DNA from: Klebsormidium nitens
Lineage: Eukaryota; Plantae; Klebsormidiophyceae
Assembly (NCBI GenBank): GCA_000708835.1
Contig: DF238762.1
Span: 62,001-126,000 of the forward strand
DNA length: 64,000 nt
Reading direction: 5' to 3'
Position numbers and translations under genes: made by a program. The number at the start of each line of letters is the position of its first letter. The first letter of the stretch is position 1. This document shows positions 18,396 to 60,088 of this stretch, piece by piece. The notes under the pieces were generated by a model. It did no database searches. It saw only the letters and a list, made by a program, of their open reading frames with translations, and was not told the DNA's origin.

Positions 18396-18483
18396 GGAGA
18401 GGTGGCTGAGTGGCCGATAGCGATAGATTGCTAATCTGTTGTACGCCCTAGGTGTACCGAGGGTTCGAATCCCTCCCTCTCCA
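18396..18483 (+). tRNA. trnS: tRNA-Ser(GCU)
   Basis: Anticodon loop TTGCTAA, long variable arm. Confidence 0.94.
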
Positions 18484-19539: not shown

Positions 19540-19936
19540 CTGCTAACATTAACCGATGAGAGGTCGAAGTTTGTTTCAATAAAAAAGCAAGTTTGACTAT
19601 AAAATATAGGAAGTTCCTTTTTTTATTTATATAGATTTTAGGATAAACTTGAGAGCTTCATTAACTTTTGTTTTATAAAGTATAGGGTTTTTTCTTTTCT
19701 GGGAATTGAATTTTAGTTTTGGAATAAAATTTTTTTAAAGTGTTTAGATTTTTTTTAATAAAAAAGTTTGTTTTCAGGTCTTATTCATTGGAATATTACT
19801 TTCGTTTAGGTTTGTTTCGCTTTTGTAGCAAACAAAGTTTATATTCCTCTTCATTTGGAGCCTTATGAGGTTAATTTCTCACGTTAGGTTCTTAAGCTAC
19901 TTAGGTCACAGTTCAAAAAACGGCCAAGTTTCTATC
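19540..19936 (+). other. 3' half of trans-spliced group II intron of rps12 (start approximate)
   Basis: Domain V GAGCCTTATGAG...CACGTTAGGTTC 19858-19891, domain VI ending TTTCTATC. Confidence 0.85.
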
Positions 19937-30127: not shown

Positions 30128-30200
30128 TAAATTTTTGTCCTTTATTGAGTACTAAAAACTTTTTTTATTTCGATATATCAATTTATTTAGGAGTTTAGTG

Positions 30201-33200
30201 ATGGAAAATCAGATCATTCAACTTAAAAAACGGAATAAGTATTACAATGAACGAATTGTAATAAATCAAGGAATAGACAAGAGCTCACTGAAAGCTTTAA
30301 TTGCAAACCTTACATTGGAAGAAAGTGGAACCCAACCTGTTGCAGAGAGACTTGATCGACTCAAATGGCTTGGCTTTCATCATGCTACCCAATTTGGTAC
30401 TTCTTTAAGCATTGAAGATCTTTGGATGCCGTATGCAAAAGAGTGGCTGATTCAAGATGCAGAATATGAAGAAAAAAATTCAGAAAACAGTTTAGAAAAG
30501 GCTGATATGGACGCCGTAGAACGCCTTCGTGCCCTTATTGATACGTGGTCACGAACTGGAGAATCTCTTAAAAAAGAGATGATACTAACTTTCCAGAGTC
30601 TTGATCCCTTTAATCCAATTTTTATGATGGCCTTCTCTGGAGCTAGGGGCAACTGGTCACAGGTACATCAGTTGTTAGGTATGCGTGGTCTAATGTCTGA
30701 CCCACAAGGTCAGATCATCGATCTTCCTATTCGAAGCAACTTTCGGGAAGGTCTTTCAGTTACCGAGTACATTATTTCTTGTTATGGTGCAAGAAAAGGC
30801 GTTGTAGATACTGCCGTTCGAACTGCAACCTCAGGCTACTTAACGCGCCGCCTTGTCGATGTAGCGCAACATGTAATCGTTCGTTCTTCCGATTGTCATA
30901 CTTCTTCTGGGTTTTGGATCCAAGCTTTGCGAGAAACAAAGCAACGAAAAACAGGCTATCACTCATTTCGTCGCACATACCTCACTCTAAGTCACAGGCT
31001 TGTTGGGCGTGTTCTTGCTCAAGACATTCGTTTTGATTCCAAACTTTTAGCCGGATGCGGAGATGATATAGGAAATAACTTGGCAAATTTTCTAAGTTCT
31101 ATATTTTCTCAAAAGATTCAATTGCGCTCTCCTTTTACATGCGCTCAGGCTCGTTCTATATGTCAATGTTGTTATGGCTGGAATCTTGCACAAGGCAATC
31201 TTGTTACTATTGGAGAAGCCGTAGGGATTGTGGCTGCTCAATCGATTGGGGAACCGGGAACTCAACTTACTATGCGAACTTTTCACACAGGAGGAGTTTT
31301 TAGTGGAGAAGTCGCAGAGCAGGTACGCGCACCTTTTAATGGTTTTGTTTATTTTGATCCCGCCCGAGCAAAACGTGTACATCGCTTTGGCGGTGATGAG
31401 AATCGCCAAGCATGGCTTACTCAAGAACCTCTTGAAATTCTTGTCCTTGGTACTCAAGCGCTTGCATTGCAAGTGCCTTCTCTTACTTTAATATCCCTTC
31501 AACCAGGACAAGCTGTGCTTTCTCGGCAGGTGATTGCAGAAATTCGATCTTCTCTTCTTACTTTTACTGAAACTGCAAATAAAGTCATTCATGCAGATCT
31601 TAATGGTCAAGTTTTTCTTCAAAAAGGTAATCGTCTTGAAGCCATTCATAACGATTCGCTTTTTGAGAAAGAAAAAAATGATTCTCGTCTTCCTAGAGAA
31701 CGGATGACTTCGTTGCGACAAGAGGTTCGTGCCTGGGTGATGTCAGCTCAGGAATTACGTTTTTTCAAGCAGCTTCAAACGTTTGATTTATATAAATTGA
31801 ACGATATGATTCAAGCTGGAGCGATTCTACAAAATAAAATTCTTTCTTTTTCTAAGCCTCCAGGAACTCTATCGTTTGAATTTGCTACAAGTATAGCAAC
31901 TTTTAAATGCTCCGATACTGTGTTTTCAAATCATTTTCCTTTTATAGAGCGATGGGGTAGCCTTTGTTTATTTTCGAATGGGTCAAAAAAAGAATCAATC
32001 TCAAAAAAAAAATCAGGCCTTTTGTCTTCATTTTTGTCAATCCGTACAAAAAAGAACATTCGCTTTACTCGATCTAAATGGAATTGTCTTGATTTGCTCT
32101 CTTATAAAAATGATAAAACAATAGTTCGATGGCCACCAGACTTAGTACGCGCAAAATTTCAAATGAGAGAAATAGGCTCTTCTTATTCTGCAACCTCGTT
32201 GCGCTCTTGCCCTGTGTTTCCTCAAGATGAAAGAAAACGTCATGGTCATGTGTTTCTTTCACAAACTTTTTTTACTAAGAATACAGGTAGTTTTTTGCAA
32301 AAAGTTGGCGTTTATGATCAACATTGGGCACAATTACTTTTCCGTAACGAGGATTATGTCGGGTTATATCCGTGGAATAGAGGAATCAATTTGGAAAAAG
32401 GTTTGTCCCCTTGGGCTCATGGTACTTTTATACAATCAGTTGATACTGCTAATATATGGTTTCCTAGGCAGACCAAAGGCCTTTTATATAAACTAGGATA
32501 TAACAATACGGAAGGTTCTCTCTTAATAGACAATTTGGGGAATTGGCGCTTGGACGGCAATTGGAACGTTTATTTGTTGAAACCAATTTGGGTACCATCG
32601 ATTGGATTACAAGCTTTATATAGTCAGTTAGGGGCATGGATTTTGCCAAGAAAGTTACCTTTGTATTATTCGAATAAGGTCAAAACATTTTCTGGTCATG
32701 TAACAAAAATGTATGCGAACTATTTAATACTTCGACATGGTATTCCTTATCTTGCTAACCCCGGCACAGTCCTTTTTCAGGGCCCTGGTAGTCCGATTTG
32801 TCAAGGAGAACCTTTGATTGGTCTTGTATATACTCGTCCTAAAACCGCCGATATTGTCCAAGGCTTACCTAAAGTAGAACGTTTACTTGAAGCTCGGATA
32901 TCTCACCCTCTTGTACATTATGCTAAAGAACTCTTTTATAGACTTTTTCAAGCAAATTATCAAAGATGCTTTCAAAAGGATAAAGATCCTAAGTCTCTTG
33001 TATATACAGAGGCAAACATTGAAAAAGCACAAGCTTTTCTTTTAGATGCAGTCCAAGAGGTCTATCAATCTCAAAAGGTAGGGATTTCAGACCGTCATTT
33101 GGAGCTTATTGTTCGACAGATGACTTCATTAGTGATAGTGAATGGAAATAGAGAGATTAGAAATCAGCCAGGAGATATTGCTCGTCATAGGCAAACTTTT

Positions 33201-33566
33201 TCTTATAGCAAAATTTTAACTTCTCCTGTACCAACTCATCCATTGATCTTAGGGATTACCAGAGCAGCTTTAACTACTGAGAGTTTTCTTTCGGAAGCCG
33301 GCTTTCAAGAAACAAGCCGCGTACTTGCTCGCTCAGCTAGCCGGGGAAGGATTGATTGGCTTAGGGGTATCAAAGGAAGAGTTATGATTGGAGAATTAAT
33401 TCCTGCAGGGACTGGTGTTTTATCTATAAGCCCTCTTTTTTTATCTCCGACTGCTTTAAAAAATAAAAAACAGCTTTGGTACGATTCAAATCAATCATTA
33501 TTCAATTCAAAAGACTCTATCTTGGATTTAGTATTAAGCATTCAAAAAACAATTCCGGAATCATAA
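30201..33566 (+). CDS. rpoC2: RNA polymerase beta''
   Basis: GYLTRRLVDVAQ, EPGTQLTMRTFHTGG, QGLPKVERLLEAR. Confidence 0.95.
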   Translation: MENQIIQLKKRNKYYNERIVINQGIDKSSLKALIANLTLEESGTQPVAERLDRLKWLGFHHATQFGTSLSIEDLWMPYAKEWLIQDAEYEEKNSENSLEKADMDAVERLRALIDTWSRTGESLKKEMILTFQSLDPFNPIFMMAFSGARGNWSQVHQLLGMRGLMSDPQGQIIDLPIRSNFREGLSVTEYIISCYGARKGVVDTAVRTATSGYLTRRLVDVAQHVIVRSSDCHTSSGFWIQALRETKQRKTGYHSFRRTYLTLSHRLVGRVLAQDIRFDSKLLAGCGDDIGNNLANFLSSIFSQKIQLRSPFTCAQARSICQCCYGWNLAQGNLVTIGEAVGIVAAQSIGEPGTQLTMRTFHTGGVFSGEVAEQVRAPFNGFVYFDPARAKRVHRFGGDENRQAWLTQEPLEILVLGTQALALQVPSLTLISLQPGQAVLSRQVIAEIRSSLLTFTETANKVIHADLNGQVFLQKGNRLEAIHNDSLFEKEKNDSRLPRERMTSLRQEVRAWVMSAQELRFFKQLQTFDLYKLNDMIQAGAILQNKILSFSKPPGTLSFEFATSIATFKCSDTVFSNHFPFIERWGSLCLFSNGSKKESISKKKSGLLSSFLSIRTKKNIRFTRSKWNCLDLLSYKNDKTIVRWPPDLVRAKFQMREIGSSYSATSLRSCPVFPQDERKRHGHVFLSQTFFTKNTGSFLQKVGVYDQHWAQLLFRNEDYVGLYPWNRGINLEKGLSPWAHGTFIQSVDTANIWFPRQTKGLLYKLGYNNTEGSLLIDNLGNWRLDGNWNVYLLKPIWVPSIGLQALYSQLGAWILPRKLPLYYSNKVKTFSGHVTKMYANYLILRHGIPYLANPGTVLFQGPGSPICQGEPLIGLVYTRPKTADIVQGLPKVERLLEARISHPLVHYAKELFYRLFQANYQRCFQKDKDPKSLVYTEANIEKAQAFLLDAVQEVYQSQKVGISDRHLELIVRQMTSLVIVNGNREIRNQPGDIARHRQTFSYSKILTSPVPTHPLILGITRAALTTESFLSEAGFQETSRVLARSASRGRIDWLRGIKGRVMIGELIPAGTGVLSISPLFLSPTALKNKKQLWYDSNQSLFNSKDSILDLVLSIQKTIPES

Positions 33567-33867
33567 TTATAAAACCAAAGCCGAGGGTCCATAAAATATT
33601 CGGTAAAAATTTCCACTGAAAAAAGAAACCCGTTTTCAATCTTTTCGCTTTTGAATTCTTTTTAAGAATTCAGTTTTTTTATTTACATTCAATGAATCTT
33701 CATTAGGGCTACTGTTGATCTATAAAAGTGCCCACGATTGATGTGGGCCTTTTTATCCCTTTGGTGAAAAAACTCTAGATTACTTGCTCTTGACGTGAGC
33801 CCAGAGTAATATTCATTGTTGTTCAAAAAGATAACTTTTTTCAATATCTGCTTATAGTTCTTTGTGA

Positions 33868-33939
33868 GCGCTCATCGTTCAAAGGATAGGACAGTGGCCT
33901 TCTAAGCCTCTGATATAGGTTCGAATCCTATTGGGCGTA
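33868..33939 (+). tRNA. trnR: tRNA-Arg(UCU)
   Basis: Anticodon loop CTTCTAA, GGTTCGAATCC. Confidence 0.9.
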
Positions 33940-33940
33940 A

Positions 33941-34026
33941 AGGAGAGAGAGGGATTCGAACCCTCGGCAGCTAAAGGCTGCACCGGTTTTCAAAACCGGA
34001 ACAATCGTCCACTCTGTCATCTCTCC
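33941..34026 (-). tRNA. trnS: tRNA-Ser(UGA)
   Basis: CCGGT-TTTGAAA-ACCGG anticodon arm. Confidence 0.93.
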
Positions 34027-34094
34027 CTGTTCTATAGGATAGCTTGCATGTTCGTTCATTGGGCTTTTGCTTGAGACAAATACTATACAAGGAG

Positions 34095-34575
34095 TTGCGA
34101 TCATGTAAATGATTTGAGGAAGATGGGGTTGTAAGCAAACCTTATGGGCATCTAGCAGATCGTTTGCTGAGAGGCAAGAGGTGACAGCTGCTAGTAAAGC
34201 TTTAATAAACCAAGAGGGTTTTCCTTCTAAGCTTCTATTTGCTTGTGCTTCAAGGCAATCCATGAAATAAGCGTAAGTTTTTTATTAAAAATGTAAATGT
34301 GTTTAGTCTTATTTCTCTCTTTGAAAGAAGACCATCTCGAGCAGCATTACGTGTAATGGGTTAGCTTGCTGAGCTTTTAACCTCTTTCAATCAAAAAAAC
34401 ATGTACCCAAGCCGAGAAGGCTTAGAGGAGGACAGGAACAGGTATGTTTTCTAGTTGGTCCATTCATGCAGATAAAGAAGATAGATCAGTGAATCTGTTG
34501 AAACGAGCCGGATGAAACGCAAAATTCATGTCCGGTTCTTCAAAAAGGAAAATCAAAAGGTTTTCCTATTCCTGC
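34095..34575 (+). other. Group IIB intron in the psbZ 5' UTR
   Basis: 5' TTGCG, domain V 34505-34538, bulged A 34568 at -8, EBS1 TTCCTT (34221-34226) pairs with preceding AAGGAG. Confidence 0.85.
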
Positions 34576-34582
34576 AAGCAAT

Positions 34583-34771
34583 ATGATCCTTCCTTTTCAA
34601 CTATCTCTTTTTGCTTTGGTTGCCATCTCTTTTTTGTTAGTCATTGGGGTCCCAGTAATCTTGGCTTCGCCTAATGGATGGTCTAGTTCTAAGAATCTTG
34701 TGTTCTCAGGCACCTCCTTATGGATTGGCCTTGTCTTTTTGGTGGGTCTTTTGAGCTCTTTTACTGGATAA
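34583..34771 (+). CDS. psbZ: PSII protein Z
   Basis: [29 protein letters not shown], 62 aa. Confidence 0.96.
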
Positions 34772-34819
34772 AGGAGTAATAAAACTTTTTTTGCTTATTA
34801 AGTAAGATAATTTTTAATG

Positions 34820-34892
34820 CACGCTCTGTAGGACTCGAACCTACGACATCAGGTTTTGGAGACCTGCGTTCTACCAACTGAACTAAGAGCGC
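34820..34892 (-). tRNA. trnW: tRNA-Trp(CCA)
   Basis: Anticodon loop CTCCAAA. Confidence 0.94.
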
Positions 34893-34902
34893 TCAATTCC
34901 TT

Positions 34903-34976
34903 TAGGGCTGACAGGATTCGAACCTGCGACATTTTGTACCCAAAACAAACGCGCTACCAGGCTGCGCTACAGCCCT
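34903..34976 (-). tRNA. trnP: tRNA-Pro(UGG)
   Basis: TTTGT-TTTGGGT-ACAAA anticodon arm. Confidence 0.94.
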
Positions 34977-35025
34977 TGTACTTTCTATTGTACATCATAT
35001 GGACGTGGCAGACGAAGTACAATAG

Positions 35026-35226
<201 letters not shown>

Positions 35227-55321: not shown

Positions 55322-57779
<2,458 letters not shown>

Positions 57780-57931: not shown

Positions 57932-58822
57932 ATGAGCAAAGTACAAACTGGTCTTTCTGTGTTACGTGGCTGGGTTATACGTTTTTTAGATCAAGAATTA
58001 GAAATAGCTTGCACGGCGGTGCGCCAGATTCAAGAAATTGAAAGAGTTTACATTCGTTATCAAGATGCACCACATCTAACCTATGATCAGTTTCAGACTT
58101 TAAGGCTTTATTTAGATACGATCCGAGAACAAGCTTTAGATGAAATGGAGCAAAGCCTACTTCATTTTGAAAGATTTTTTTGGTTCCGAACAGAACAAAA
58201 GCAACTTACTTTTCAAAACAAGCTTTGGTTTATTGAAGGGATTGTATGGGAAATGAATCAATCAACAGAAATTCTTCAACAACAGCTTAAAATAAATGGT
58301 CTAACTGCTGACGAACCAATTGGGCTTATTCCTAGATCAATAGCTCGAACGTTTTCACGTTTACAAACCGAGTTGGATCCTGATGCAGAACCTTTGCTTA
58401 TGCAAGAGTTTAAACTGATTCGTTACCAAGCGATAGCCTCGTTTCAATTTTTAGGTCATTTGTTATTTTTTCCATGGGTATCTCAACAAATTCTTAAAAT
58501 CTTTTTTTTTAAGCCCATCCTTTCGCATTGGTGGAATACAGGACAACGAGAGCTTTTTCTTAATTCTTTTCAAGAACAAAAAGCACTTGAAGAACTTCAA
58601 AAATTAGAGGACACTGCATGGCTTGATTTACTTATGACTTATTCATCTGAGGTTCCTCTATCTCTTTTTATCAATACGATTCATGAAAGAGCATTACAAC
58701 TTGTAGCAAGTACTAATGATTATAGTATCCAAGCTTTAGTGCAACTTTGTACTGATGGGATTTTTGTTTGCACATTGCTTTTATTACTTGCATTTAGCCA
58801 AAGAAAATTGTCTCTTGCTCAA
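57932..58822 (+). CDS. cemA: Envelope membrane protein CemA, exon 1
   Basis: PIGLIPRSIARTFSRLQTELDP, WWNTGQRELFLN; ends ...LSLAQ before GTGCG. Confidence 0.9.
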
Positions 58823-59313
58823 GTGCGTGCTGTCAAAGTTTGTGGGTTTTATAAAAATGAAAAAAAATGCTAACCAATCACAAAAAGTTTTTGGGACAGT
58901 AGCATGCATTGATTTATTTTAAGTTTTTAAAAACTTGAAAATTTTTGATGTCACAATTTAGTTTTTGTTATTTATTAACTTTGTCTTTAAACGTAGATTG
59001 TTTATTGCTTTGCTATTTTTGATAGCGTGCAGGTGGATATTAACCGGACCAGAGAGAGCGCTCCGGTTTATTTTAGTTAAATATGGTCCACAAGTTTGAA
59101 GAAAATTTTTAAGGACAACAAATATTGTGAAAAATCACCCTAATCTTTAAACAGTTATATCGGTTCAAAACGCTGGTAGAGCCCAAGAAATTTTCGGGCC
59201 AAAATGAAAATCTTGTATTCTCTTACAAGAAAGTCATTCTTGTGAGCCGAGTGTTCTATTTGGCACATGCTCGGTTCGAAAGTCAAAACAAAAATGATCA
59301 AGTTTTGTCTTAT
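58823..59313 (+). other. cemA group II intron 1
   Basis: GTGCG...GTCTTAT, domain V 59244-59277. Confidence 0.87.
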
Positions 59314-59346
59314 TCGTTAATATATGAGCTGTTTTATAGCTTGAGT
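59314..59346 (+). CDS. cemA: CemA, exon 2 (33 nt)
   Basis: SLIYELFYSLS, supplying the conserved (Y)SLS before DTMKAF. Confidence 0.85.
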
Positions 59347-59836
59347 GTGCGTCTTTTAACCTATTTGCAGCAAGCTTTCTTCGCTATAGTAAAACTAAAA
59401 AGGTCGCTGAGGAGCGGGCTATTACAGCTAGTGTTACTTTTTTTAATTCTTAAAAGGTAGTAAAAATGAATAAGCAATATGAATCACCTTGTAGATTAGA
59501 TCCCAAATGAAGTGGAAATTTTCAACGAAAGTGCTTGCTAATGCTCAATAGCGAGGTCTTGTGATTTTAGAGGGTGTACAAGCTTGACCTTAGTAAAGAT
59601 AATTGAAAGCTGCAAAATATAGAAAAGTCAATTTCCATAGACAATATTCTCTATGGAGATCAGGAAAAAAGATATAATAAGCAAAGTACTTTGTATTTTT
59701 TCTTATCTAGCATCAATAAGAAGATTTTTGATTAACAGATTATTTGAAATTGAATGCTAGTGAAAGAGCCGTATGAAACTTGTATTCGTTTCACGTCCGG
59801 TTCAAAAGGAGGGAGATAAAAAGATCCTATCTCACC
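59347..59836 (+). other. cemA group IIB intron 2
   Basis: GTGCG...CCTATCTCACC, domain V 59766-59803, bulged A 59829 at -8, EBS1 GCTCAA (59543-59548) pairs with TTGAGT. Confidence 0.9.
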
Positions 59837-60088
59837 GATACCATGAAAGCTTTTTTAATTTTGCTTTTTACAGATTTATTAATAGGTTTTCATTCTCCTC
59901 ATGGATGGGAAATATTAATTGAATCTTTTATGACATATCTTGGTTTTGCTCCAAACCAATATGTTGTTTCTCTTTTTGTTTCTACTTTCCCAGTTATTGT
60001 AGATACAGTCTTTAAGTATTGGATCTTTCGTCATCTTAATCGCGTATCTCCCTCTATTGTGGTAACTTACCATACGATGAGTGAATAA
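59837..60088 (+). CDS. cemA: CemA, exon 3
   Basis: [25 protein letters not shown]...[12 protein letters not shown]. Confidence 0.93.

Follow-up and report, generated by a model that had tools for sequence, protein, structure and literature searches.

How is a plastid gene translated when its Shine-Dalgarno element (SD) stands 488 nucleotides (nt) ahead of its start codon? The question is raised by psbZ in the plastome of the streptophyte Klebsormidium nitens, within a stretch of 64,000 nt (assembly GCA_000708835.1, contig DF238762.1, positions 62,001 to 126,000 of the forward strand) that was analysed as a whole and is here called the window, its first letter being position 1. The answer that we propose, with a probability of about 0.8, is that a group II intron is spliced from the psbZ leader just 3′ of an ancestral SD, and that the functional start site of the gene is made by this splicing: the distance from SD to AUG, 488 nt in the unspliced RNA, is 7 nt in the spliced one, and only there is the SD at a working distance. 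The element itself is a genuine cis-spliced group II intron without an open reading frame (ORF), in an unusual and consequential position and with unusual boundary bases.

The psbZ leader and its intron

The DNA reads ...ACTATACAAGGAG up to 34094, then, as intron, TTGCG...CCTATTCCTGC up to 34575, and then AAGCAAT and the ATG at 34583. The gene product matches PF01737 and is 98% identical to the PsbZ of Klebsormidium flaccidum. The elements of the locus are as follows:

34059..34094, + strand: psbZ leader exon 1, its likely 5′ end near 34059-34066 as judged from the starts of four spliced transcript contigs
34089..34094, + strand: AAGGAG, the final 6 nt of exon 1, at once the SD and the first intron-binding site (IBS1)
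34095..34575, + strand: ORF-less group II intron, 481 nt, 5′-UUGCG...UGC-3′
34576..34582, + strand: AAGCAAU, the leader part of exon 2, which after splicing separates SD and AUG by 7 nt
34583..34771, + strand: psbZ coding sequence, 62 codons and a stop, without interruption

Splicing in RNA

Logan contigs from four public RNA-type runs (X1, X2, X7 and X8, from four studies with two species labels, X7 bearing the second) were aligned to 33650-35050. The sole joint on this interval runs from 34094 to 34576, skipping 481 nt with the ends TT..GC and without any positional ambiguity. It is present in contigs of three of the studies (X2, X7, X8), while in X1 a contig that starts at 34576 has a loose end, ACTATACAAGGAG, which amounts to the same junction. 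Other samples supplied a further four independent contigs of transcripts (L004, L007, L008, L009), which read ACAAGGAG-AAGCAAT-ATG, in agreement with the spliced product ...ACAAGGAG/AAGCAAU-AUG, and the junction is thus found in at least seven independent datasets under two or more species labels. Taken together, the joints of X2, X7 and X8, the loose end of X1 and the four transcript contigs show that excision and exon ligation are exact in vivo, and 34095-34575 is removed from the RNA with a precision of one base, as predicted. No alternative joint was seen in the contigs of the four runs on this interval.

The initial annotation, made from the letters alone, had placed a group II intron between the SD and the start of psbZ, and had named the junction that RNA should contain. 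Its boundaries were exact, the junction is there, and the layout it derived, AAGGAG-N7-AUG in place of a separation of 488 nt, is what the spliced contigs contain and is also the spacing of psbB, psaJ and rpoC2; the class of the intron is borne out by the excision, by an Rfam match to domains V/VI and by covariation over six domains, as described below.

Intron-containing, unspliced contigs were also seen, at lower depth. The depths in X7 are 235 upstream, about 1050 in the intron, 4212 on the junction unitig and 7082 in exon 2; this steeply uneven profile is typical of RNA, the junction unitig standing well above the flanking depth and reaching about 60% of that of exon 2. A rough estimate from the k-mer depths of junction and intron puts the spliced fraction at 70-80% in X2, X7 and X8, whereas for X1 no junction depth was obtained (intron 7.3 against exon 2 12.9).

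Group II architecture

Four further plastome contigs of Klebsormidium type have a homologous intron of 469-509 nt at this site, three of them environmental assemblies with a PsbZ 95% identical (L001, L002, L003) and the fourth L006. None of the five long contigs of genome type lacks the intron, and all copies begin with TTGCG and end with TGC, even though identity to the window copy is only 72-79%. A six-domain model, drawn up manually from the same five sequences that served to score it, contains 103 pairs, with 91.9% of the sequence-by-pair cells canonical and 11 compensatory pairs, where register-shifted controls give 38-49% and 1-5, respectively. RNAalifold independently recovers the IC arm, the hairpin of the first exon-binding site (EBS1) and domains III, V and VI, likewise with 11 compensatory pairs. 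In the run designated organism B a single substitution, U69 to C, affects a modelled pair, turning a G.U into a G-C, and the other changes lie off the modelled pairs. The domains, all on the + strand, are:

34102..34403, + strand: domain I, closed by CAUGU/ACAUG (intron nt 8-12/305-309) and by UGAUU.GAGG/UUUC.AAUCA
34409..34423, + strand: domain II, a short hairpin
34430..34461, + strand: domain III, with a conserved GGAC/GUCC and an inner helix that covaries in RNAalifold
34468..34498, + strand: domain IV, short (~30 nt), variable and without an ORF, with an 18-nt insertion in L001-L003
34505..34538, + strand: domain V, 34 nt, with an AGC triad, a 2-nt bulge and a GNRA-type loop (RF00029, RF04357, RF04336)
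34544..34570, + strand: domain VI, with a bulged A34568, 7 nt from the 3′ splice site, the putative branch point

Covariation is found in domain I, where a C-G compensation in I(i) of L003 is accompanied by a pair of IC(iii), 67/86, that occurs as C-G, G-C and A-U, and also in the distal stem of domain V, which is AUGAA/UUCAU in some copies and AUGAGGC/GCCUCAU in others. Domain V of the window reads GAGCCGG AUGAAAC GCAA AAUUCAU GU CCGGUUC, and the CUAUU of domain VI is invariant in the five homologues. The Rfam group II domain V/VI match covers 34503-34575 (local E = 2.5e-5), ending on the predicted last base of the intron. On its + strand the intron holds no ORF of 30 codons or more, save a frame of 48 codons that enters psbZ out of frame, and no reverse transcriptase or maturase is encoded in domain IV. 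A blastn comparison found no paralogue of the intron in the 64-kb window, where the only resemblance, at the level of domain V, is to the petB intron and to an intron at 51.1 kb.

Pairing of the intron with the SD

That the exon end paired by the intron is the SD itself, as had been claimed at the outset, holds by definition, IBS1 being the last 6 nt of exon 1. For its partner, every aligned intron position was scanned for complementarity, with G.U allowed, to the exon-1 end of each sequence. The relevant elements are:

34306..34332, + strand: EBS1 hairpin, with the 7-nt loop U-CUCUUU (intron nt 222-228)
34084..34088, + strand: UAUAC, a weak candidate for the second intron-binding site (IBS2), complementary to nt 257-261 in the five homologues
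34351..34355, + strand: GUGUA (nt 257-261), candidate for the second exon-binding site (EBS2); the GUAUA of L001-L003 also pairs with UAUAC

Only one site, intron nt 223-228 (34317-34322), pairs with the last six bases of exon 1 in all five sequences; it reads CUCUUU in the window and in L006, and CUUUUU in L001-L003. By chance a 6-mer would match about 1.3 times per intron, so the support for EBS1 comes not from the match alone but from its setting in a hairpin loop and from the pair between exon position -3 and intron nt 225, which passes stepwise from G-C to G.U (L001, L002) and then to A-U (L003, whose exon ends in AAGAAG). On this comparison of sequences the loop CUCUUU is most likely EBS1, and the adjoining U34316 could pair with the first base of the 3′ exon, an A. 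The EBS1 sequence is one base away from the anti-SD core CUCCUU. The initial annotation had instead taken UUCCUU (34221-34226, nt 127-132) for EBS1, and in this it erred: these bases are the 3′ strand of a conserved hairpin at nt 119-134, and their complementarity is lost in the four homologues L001-L003 and L006. The match of GUGUA or GUAUA to UAUAC is of the kind expected by chance, and the candidate EBS2 lies 3′ of EBS1, opposite to the canonical order.

Ancestry and use of the SD

In intronless streptophytes a GGAG or GGAGG lies 9-11 nt upstream of the psbZ AUG, a homologue of the Klebsormidium AAGGAG such as the initial annotation had suggested looking for. Chaetosphaeridium has CTTGGAG-N11-ATG, and psbZ contigs of land-plant type have TTGGAGGATT-N4-5-ATG; in Arabidopsis, psbZ is among the plastid genes with a strong SD (PMC7154907). 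The spliced leaders of Klebsormidium conform to this arrangement, with GGAG-N7 in the window and L006 and GGAG-N11 in L001-L003, where the spacer after splicing is 11 nt. The comparators of land-plant type came from a metagenome scan with PsbZ, which returned such loci only (63-73% identity), without any further member of the Klebsormidiophyceae; for Interfilum, Hormidiella, Streptosarcina, Entransia and Streptofilum, PsbZ is known from protein records only, and these genera stand outside the contig comparison.

The plastid 16S rRNA lies outside the window, and the use of SDs was judged from their enrichment at gene starts. An AGGAG at 5-11 nt from the start precedes at least 13 recognisable genes of the window, among them psbB, psaJ and rpoC2 (all N7), ndhB, chlB, psbC, psbE, psbF, psbL, psbJ and psbN; the reversed-sequence control gave 1 hit, and by our estimate fewer than one of the 139 copies of AGGAG in the window would fall at this distance if they were placed at random. 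Thus, because the SD is conserved in the intronless relatives and SDs are used in this plastome, the intron has split an ancestral ribosome-binding site, which splicing restores.

The leader exon with the spacer towards trnS (34040-34094) is 93-96% identical among the homologues, in comparison with 86-89% for the psbZ coding sequence. Judged from this alignment, extra constraints seem to act here, such as IBS and SD, a protein site defining the 5′ end, or the promoter of the divergent trnS.

The 5′ end of the psbZ RNA

The spliced contigs begin at 34059 (L004 and L009), 34060 (L008) and 34066 (L007). Every spliced contig includes AAGGAG and the upstream reach is to about 34059; the common starts make a mature 5′ end near 34059-34066 likely, which would leave about 43 nt of leader after splicing. 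The initial annotation had allowed that transcription might begin downstream of the SD, with TACTAT at 34081 as a -10 box, and the spliced RNAs do not bear this out, all of them containing AAGGAG and extending to about 34059. Contig starts at 34065 in X7 were dropped as 5′ ends, since they are k-1 overlaps of the graph. Some contigs extend further upstream through antisense trnS, and readthrough of this kind is known for the psbD/C/Z operon of land plants (PMC7154907). A promoter scan found no sigma-70-type promoter on the + strand upstream of 34059.

On the minus strand there is a sigma-70-like match at 34082-34109, TTTACA-16 nt-TATAGT (10/12), which is directed towards trnS(UGA) and extends over the 5′ splice site of psbZ; TACTAT approximates the reverse complement of its -10 box, and its -35 part is not kept in L001-L003.

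Proposed path from precursor to start site

If these elements are put in order, the psbZ RNA would begin near 34059, and domain I would pair with the end of exon 1, that is, with the SD hexamer AAGGAG. Excision would presumably follow by branching at A34568, assisted by trans-acting proteins, a help that we presume because the intron encodes no maturase (the sole maturase-like ORF of the plastome is reported in the psbA intron; PMC4877394). Once ligated, the exons would form a leader some 43 nt long that contains AAGGAG-N7-AUG, the standard layout of this plastome. The 25 nt ahead of the AUG in the precursor hold no GGAG and make up the 3′ strand of domain VI; given the want of an SD-like element near this AUG and the folding of these bases into domain VI, efficient translation of PsbZ is expected from the spliced RNA only. 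As for its origin, the intron may have entered by reverse splicing into an SD that resembled an IBS.

Evaluation of the proposal and alternative explanations

Several points tell against this reading, some concerning the intron and others the role of its removal. The window copy scores 33.8 bits with RF00029, under the gathering score of 40, which is passed by the domains V/VI of L001, L002 and L003 (47, 47 and 42.4 bits, ending at the predicted 3′ splice site). The 5′ consensus GUGYG is departed from by UUGCG in the five homologues, where positions 2-5 fit and position 1 is U, and the 3′ consensus AY by UGC, also in all five, where the last base is Y and the penultimate one G; of the four further RF00029 matches to domain V/VI in the window, three have the usual AU or AC at their end. 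These non-canonical boundaries are nevertheless common to the five homologues and are accurately used in vivo, and U34095 together with G34574 may be a natural covarying replacement of the boundary contact between the first and the penultimate base (G1/A(n-1)). No EBS2 was found at its canonical place, and the kind of the runs, labelled “RNA?”, was guessed, the comparison covering RNA-type runs only. With respect to translation, L003 has AAGAAG, from which it follows that the SD can weaken; for many mRNAs of plastids translation proceeds without an SD; and we infer the need for splicing from the conservation of the SD and from the use of SDs. Lastly, the spliced leader is predicted to fold so that GCUUUU, close to its 5′ end, base-pairs with a junction-spanning AGAAGC, which would partly hide the SD (predicted accessibility 0.14).

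This pairing (34063-34098 joined to 34576-34579) exists only in the spliced RNA and is broken in L006. A hairpin that hides the SD was not adopted as a mechanism, as it is unconserved there.

Two alternatives call into question the RNA evidence itself. The joined form might be an intron-less DNA copy, whether a heteroplasmic plastome or a nuclear insert of plastid DNA, or else an artefact of assembly, as the guessed kind of the runs, the strandless contigs and the missing DNA control would permit; however, the breakpoints match the group II boundaries to the base (the Rfam model ends at 34575), the identical junction recurs across the independent datasets and species labels, the joined contigs share a transcript-like start near 34059 without continuing into trnS, the depth profile is RNA-like, and the intron is present in all the long genome-type contigs, so that this explanation is hardly credible. 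It is also very unlikely that most psbZ mRNA starts downstream of AAGGAG, for example at TACTAT (34081) or inside the intron, which would leave the SD outside the functional message. The lack of a sigma-70-like promoter on the + strand upstream of 34059 speaks in its favor, as does the fact that minor 5′ ends are not mappable from contigs; but the junction unitig of X7 has some 60% of the exon-2 depth (4212 against 7082), AAGGAG is in every spliced contig, and the one match resembling a promoter, at 34082-34109, faces trnS on the minus strand.

The remaining alternatives accept the splicing and differ as to its meaning. The intron could be a neutral passenger, real and spliced, whose position is only that of an IBS-like landing site of a retrotransposing intron, PsbZ being translated without need of the SD. 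An SD resembles a purine-rich IBS1, AAGAAG is tolerated in L003, the spacer ranges from 7 to 11 nt, and initiation independent of the SD is common in plastids, all of which would suit such a passenger. So would the many lineage-specific introns of the Klebsormidium plastome, ascribed to intragenomic proliferation (PMC4877394). Against this, the psbZ SD is kept from Chaetosphaeridium to seed plants, the conservation of the leader exon exceeds that of the coding sequence, gene starts in the window are strongly enriched in SD-like sites, and no close paralogue there marks a recent spread; on balance we hold a passenger to be rather unlikely. A regulated switch, which would be a regulatory reading of the gating named in the initial annotation, supposes that the efficiency of splicing is modulated by light, development or stress, possibly through competition between the 30S subunit and EBS1 for the hexamer. 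PsbZ synthesis would in that case be set by regulated splicing, for instance by a nuclear-encoded factor sensing light or stress, and the leader would be a translational checkpoint. Since one hexamer serves as both SD and IBS1, a precursor cannot bind the ribosome there and pair intron with exon at once; the contig data include an appreciable share of unspliced RNA, and there is a bacterial precedent in which splicing decides the placement of the ribosome-binding site before the start codon (PMC3984707). However, the spliced fractions are alike (~70-80%) in the estimable runs of different studies, no sensor or aptamer-like element was found, and every group II intron must be removed, so that dependence on splicing is not in itself regulation. 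Nothing points to splicing that varies with conditions. The switch, and with it the checkpoint, therefore seems improbable; were it true, it would be a ribozyme-controlled ribosome-binding site in a plastid of the green lineage, seemingly undescribed.

Neighboring genes and other observations in the window

The genes on the upstream side of psbZ, the first of the local order being rpoC2, are:

30198-33566, + strand: rpoC2
33868-33939, + strand: trnR-UCU, between rpoC2 and trnS-UGA
33940..34027, - strand: trnS(UGA), the divergent upstream neighbor of psbZ (ARAGORN, Rfam tRNA)

After psbZ come trnW and trnP (-), and then psaJ, rpl33 and rps18. The pair 5′psbZ-5′trnS is ancestral (PMC4877394).

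A second leader intron was considered and rejected, where a domain V hit (59764-59835) is followed by CGATACC-ATG: this is the intron of cemA (57932-60088), a gene split by a group II intron whose domains V/VI end at 59835 and whose exon 2 continues in frame (HSPHGWE...), so that the ATG 7 nt past the splice site is internal. A hit to domain V only, at 19857-19892, just upstream of the rps12 exon-2/rps7 region, would fit the 3′ half of the trans-spliced intron of rps12. The matches to the Rfam “Plastid-psbI-rps4 3′UTR RNA” (33941-33991, 18431-18483 and 1645-1690; UTR, untranslated region) are under the gathering score and all antisense to tRNA genes, and they look like artefacts of tRNA complements. 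A strong match to IsrR at 56808-56994 (-) is simply antisense to psbC, the isiA homologue.

Significance

Functional introns of this kind escape a plastid annotation that goes by reading frames, and the present one also corrects misannotated PsbZ models of 67 residues that start inside it. In L001-L003 (2501-2704) the gene callers begin this 67-residue PsbZ at an ATG of the intron end, TTTATGC/AAGCAATCAATATG; as that ATG is lost on splicing, the extension of 5 residues is an artefact of annotation. Introns of green-lineage plastids are normally reported in coding or tRNA sequences, and here one splits a translation signal. The precursor and the spliced RNA differ only in the distance from SD to AUG, which makes the locus a test bed for the contribution of the SD to plastid initiation, and also for the question whether ribosomes and the splicing of a group II intron compete for one set of bases. 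The U at +1 and the penultimate G provide a naturally occurring variation on a contact examined mostly by mutagenesis, and the intron is a new character for the evolution of the plastome in the Klebsormidiophyceae.

Comparison with known systems

The initial annotation had called a leader intron of this type very unusual for plastids. For green plants the statement stands within the literature searched, where no published account of a group II intron in a leader or UTR of a green plastid was found, the search not covering the 2023 study of Klebsormidiophyceae plastomes; for plastids as a whole it has to be tempered, since euglenoids have an intercistronic intron (PMC5572947). Lemieux et al. 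(2016) list seven group II introns specific to Klebsormidium, at sites within genes, and refer to psbZ once, for gene order (PMC4877394); Civan et al. located introns by protein alignments, and psbZ is unmentioned in their text (PMC4007539). In both analyses of Klebsormidium plastomes, then, introns were found by way of intronless gene or protein homologues (PMC4877394, PMC4007539).

With the ORF-less group II introns of streptophyte plastids (petD, ndhA/ndhB and those specific to Klebsormidium) the psbZ intron shares the six-domain fold, a domain VI with a bulged A and the absence of a maturase ORF. Its 34-nt domain V is closest to the Rfam models of the plastid petD and ndhA/ndhB domain V, and, like the Klebsormidium-specific introns, it is found in a plastome known for the gain of extra introns. 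Unlike all these, it lies in a non-coding leader and not in coding or tRNA sequence, and it has the boundaries UUGCG...UGC.

The intron between rps4 and rps11 in euglenoid plastids is likewise outside coding sequence, in a transcribed spacer (PMC5572947). It is, however, a degenerate intron of group III type from a lineage saturated with introns, and a separation of SD and start is unreported for it, whereas the psbZ intron is a full-size group II intron of a streptophyte. The original description of the euglenoid intron is said to be that of Stevenson et al. in 1991.

In the allosteric ribozyme of Clostridioides difficile that responds to cyclic di-GMP (Lee et al., 2010; reviewed in PMC3984707), an intron likewise resides in the 5′ UTR, and its correct splicing brings the ribosome-binding site to a workable distance from the start codon. 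That ribozyme is a bacterial group I intron in which an aptamer picks the splice site, whereas the psbZ intron has no evident sensor or alternative splice site. The group II introns of bacteria at intergenic or terminator-proximal sites also lie outside coding sequence, but they are mobile, encode a maturase and avoid disturbing the genes of the host. In contrast, the psbZ intron is ORF-less, has been conserved vertically at one site, and interrupts a functional signal of translation.

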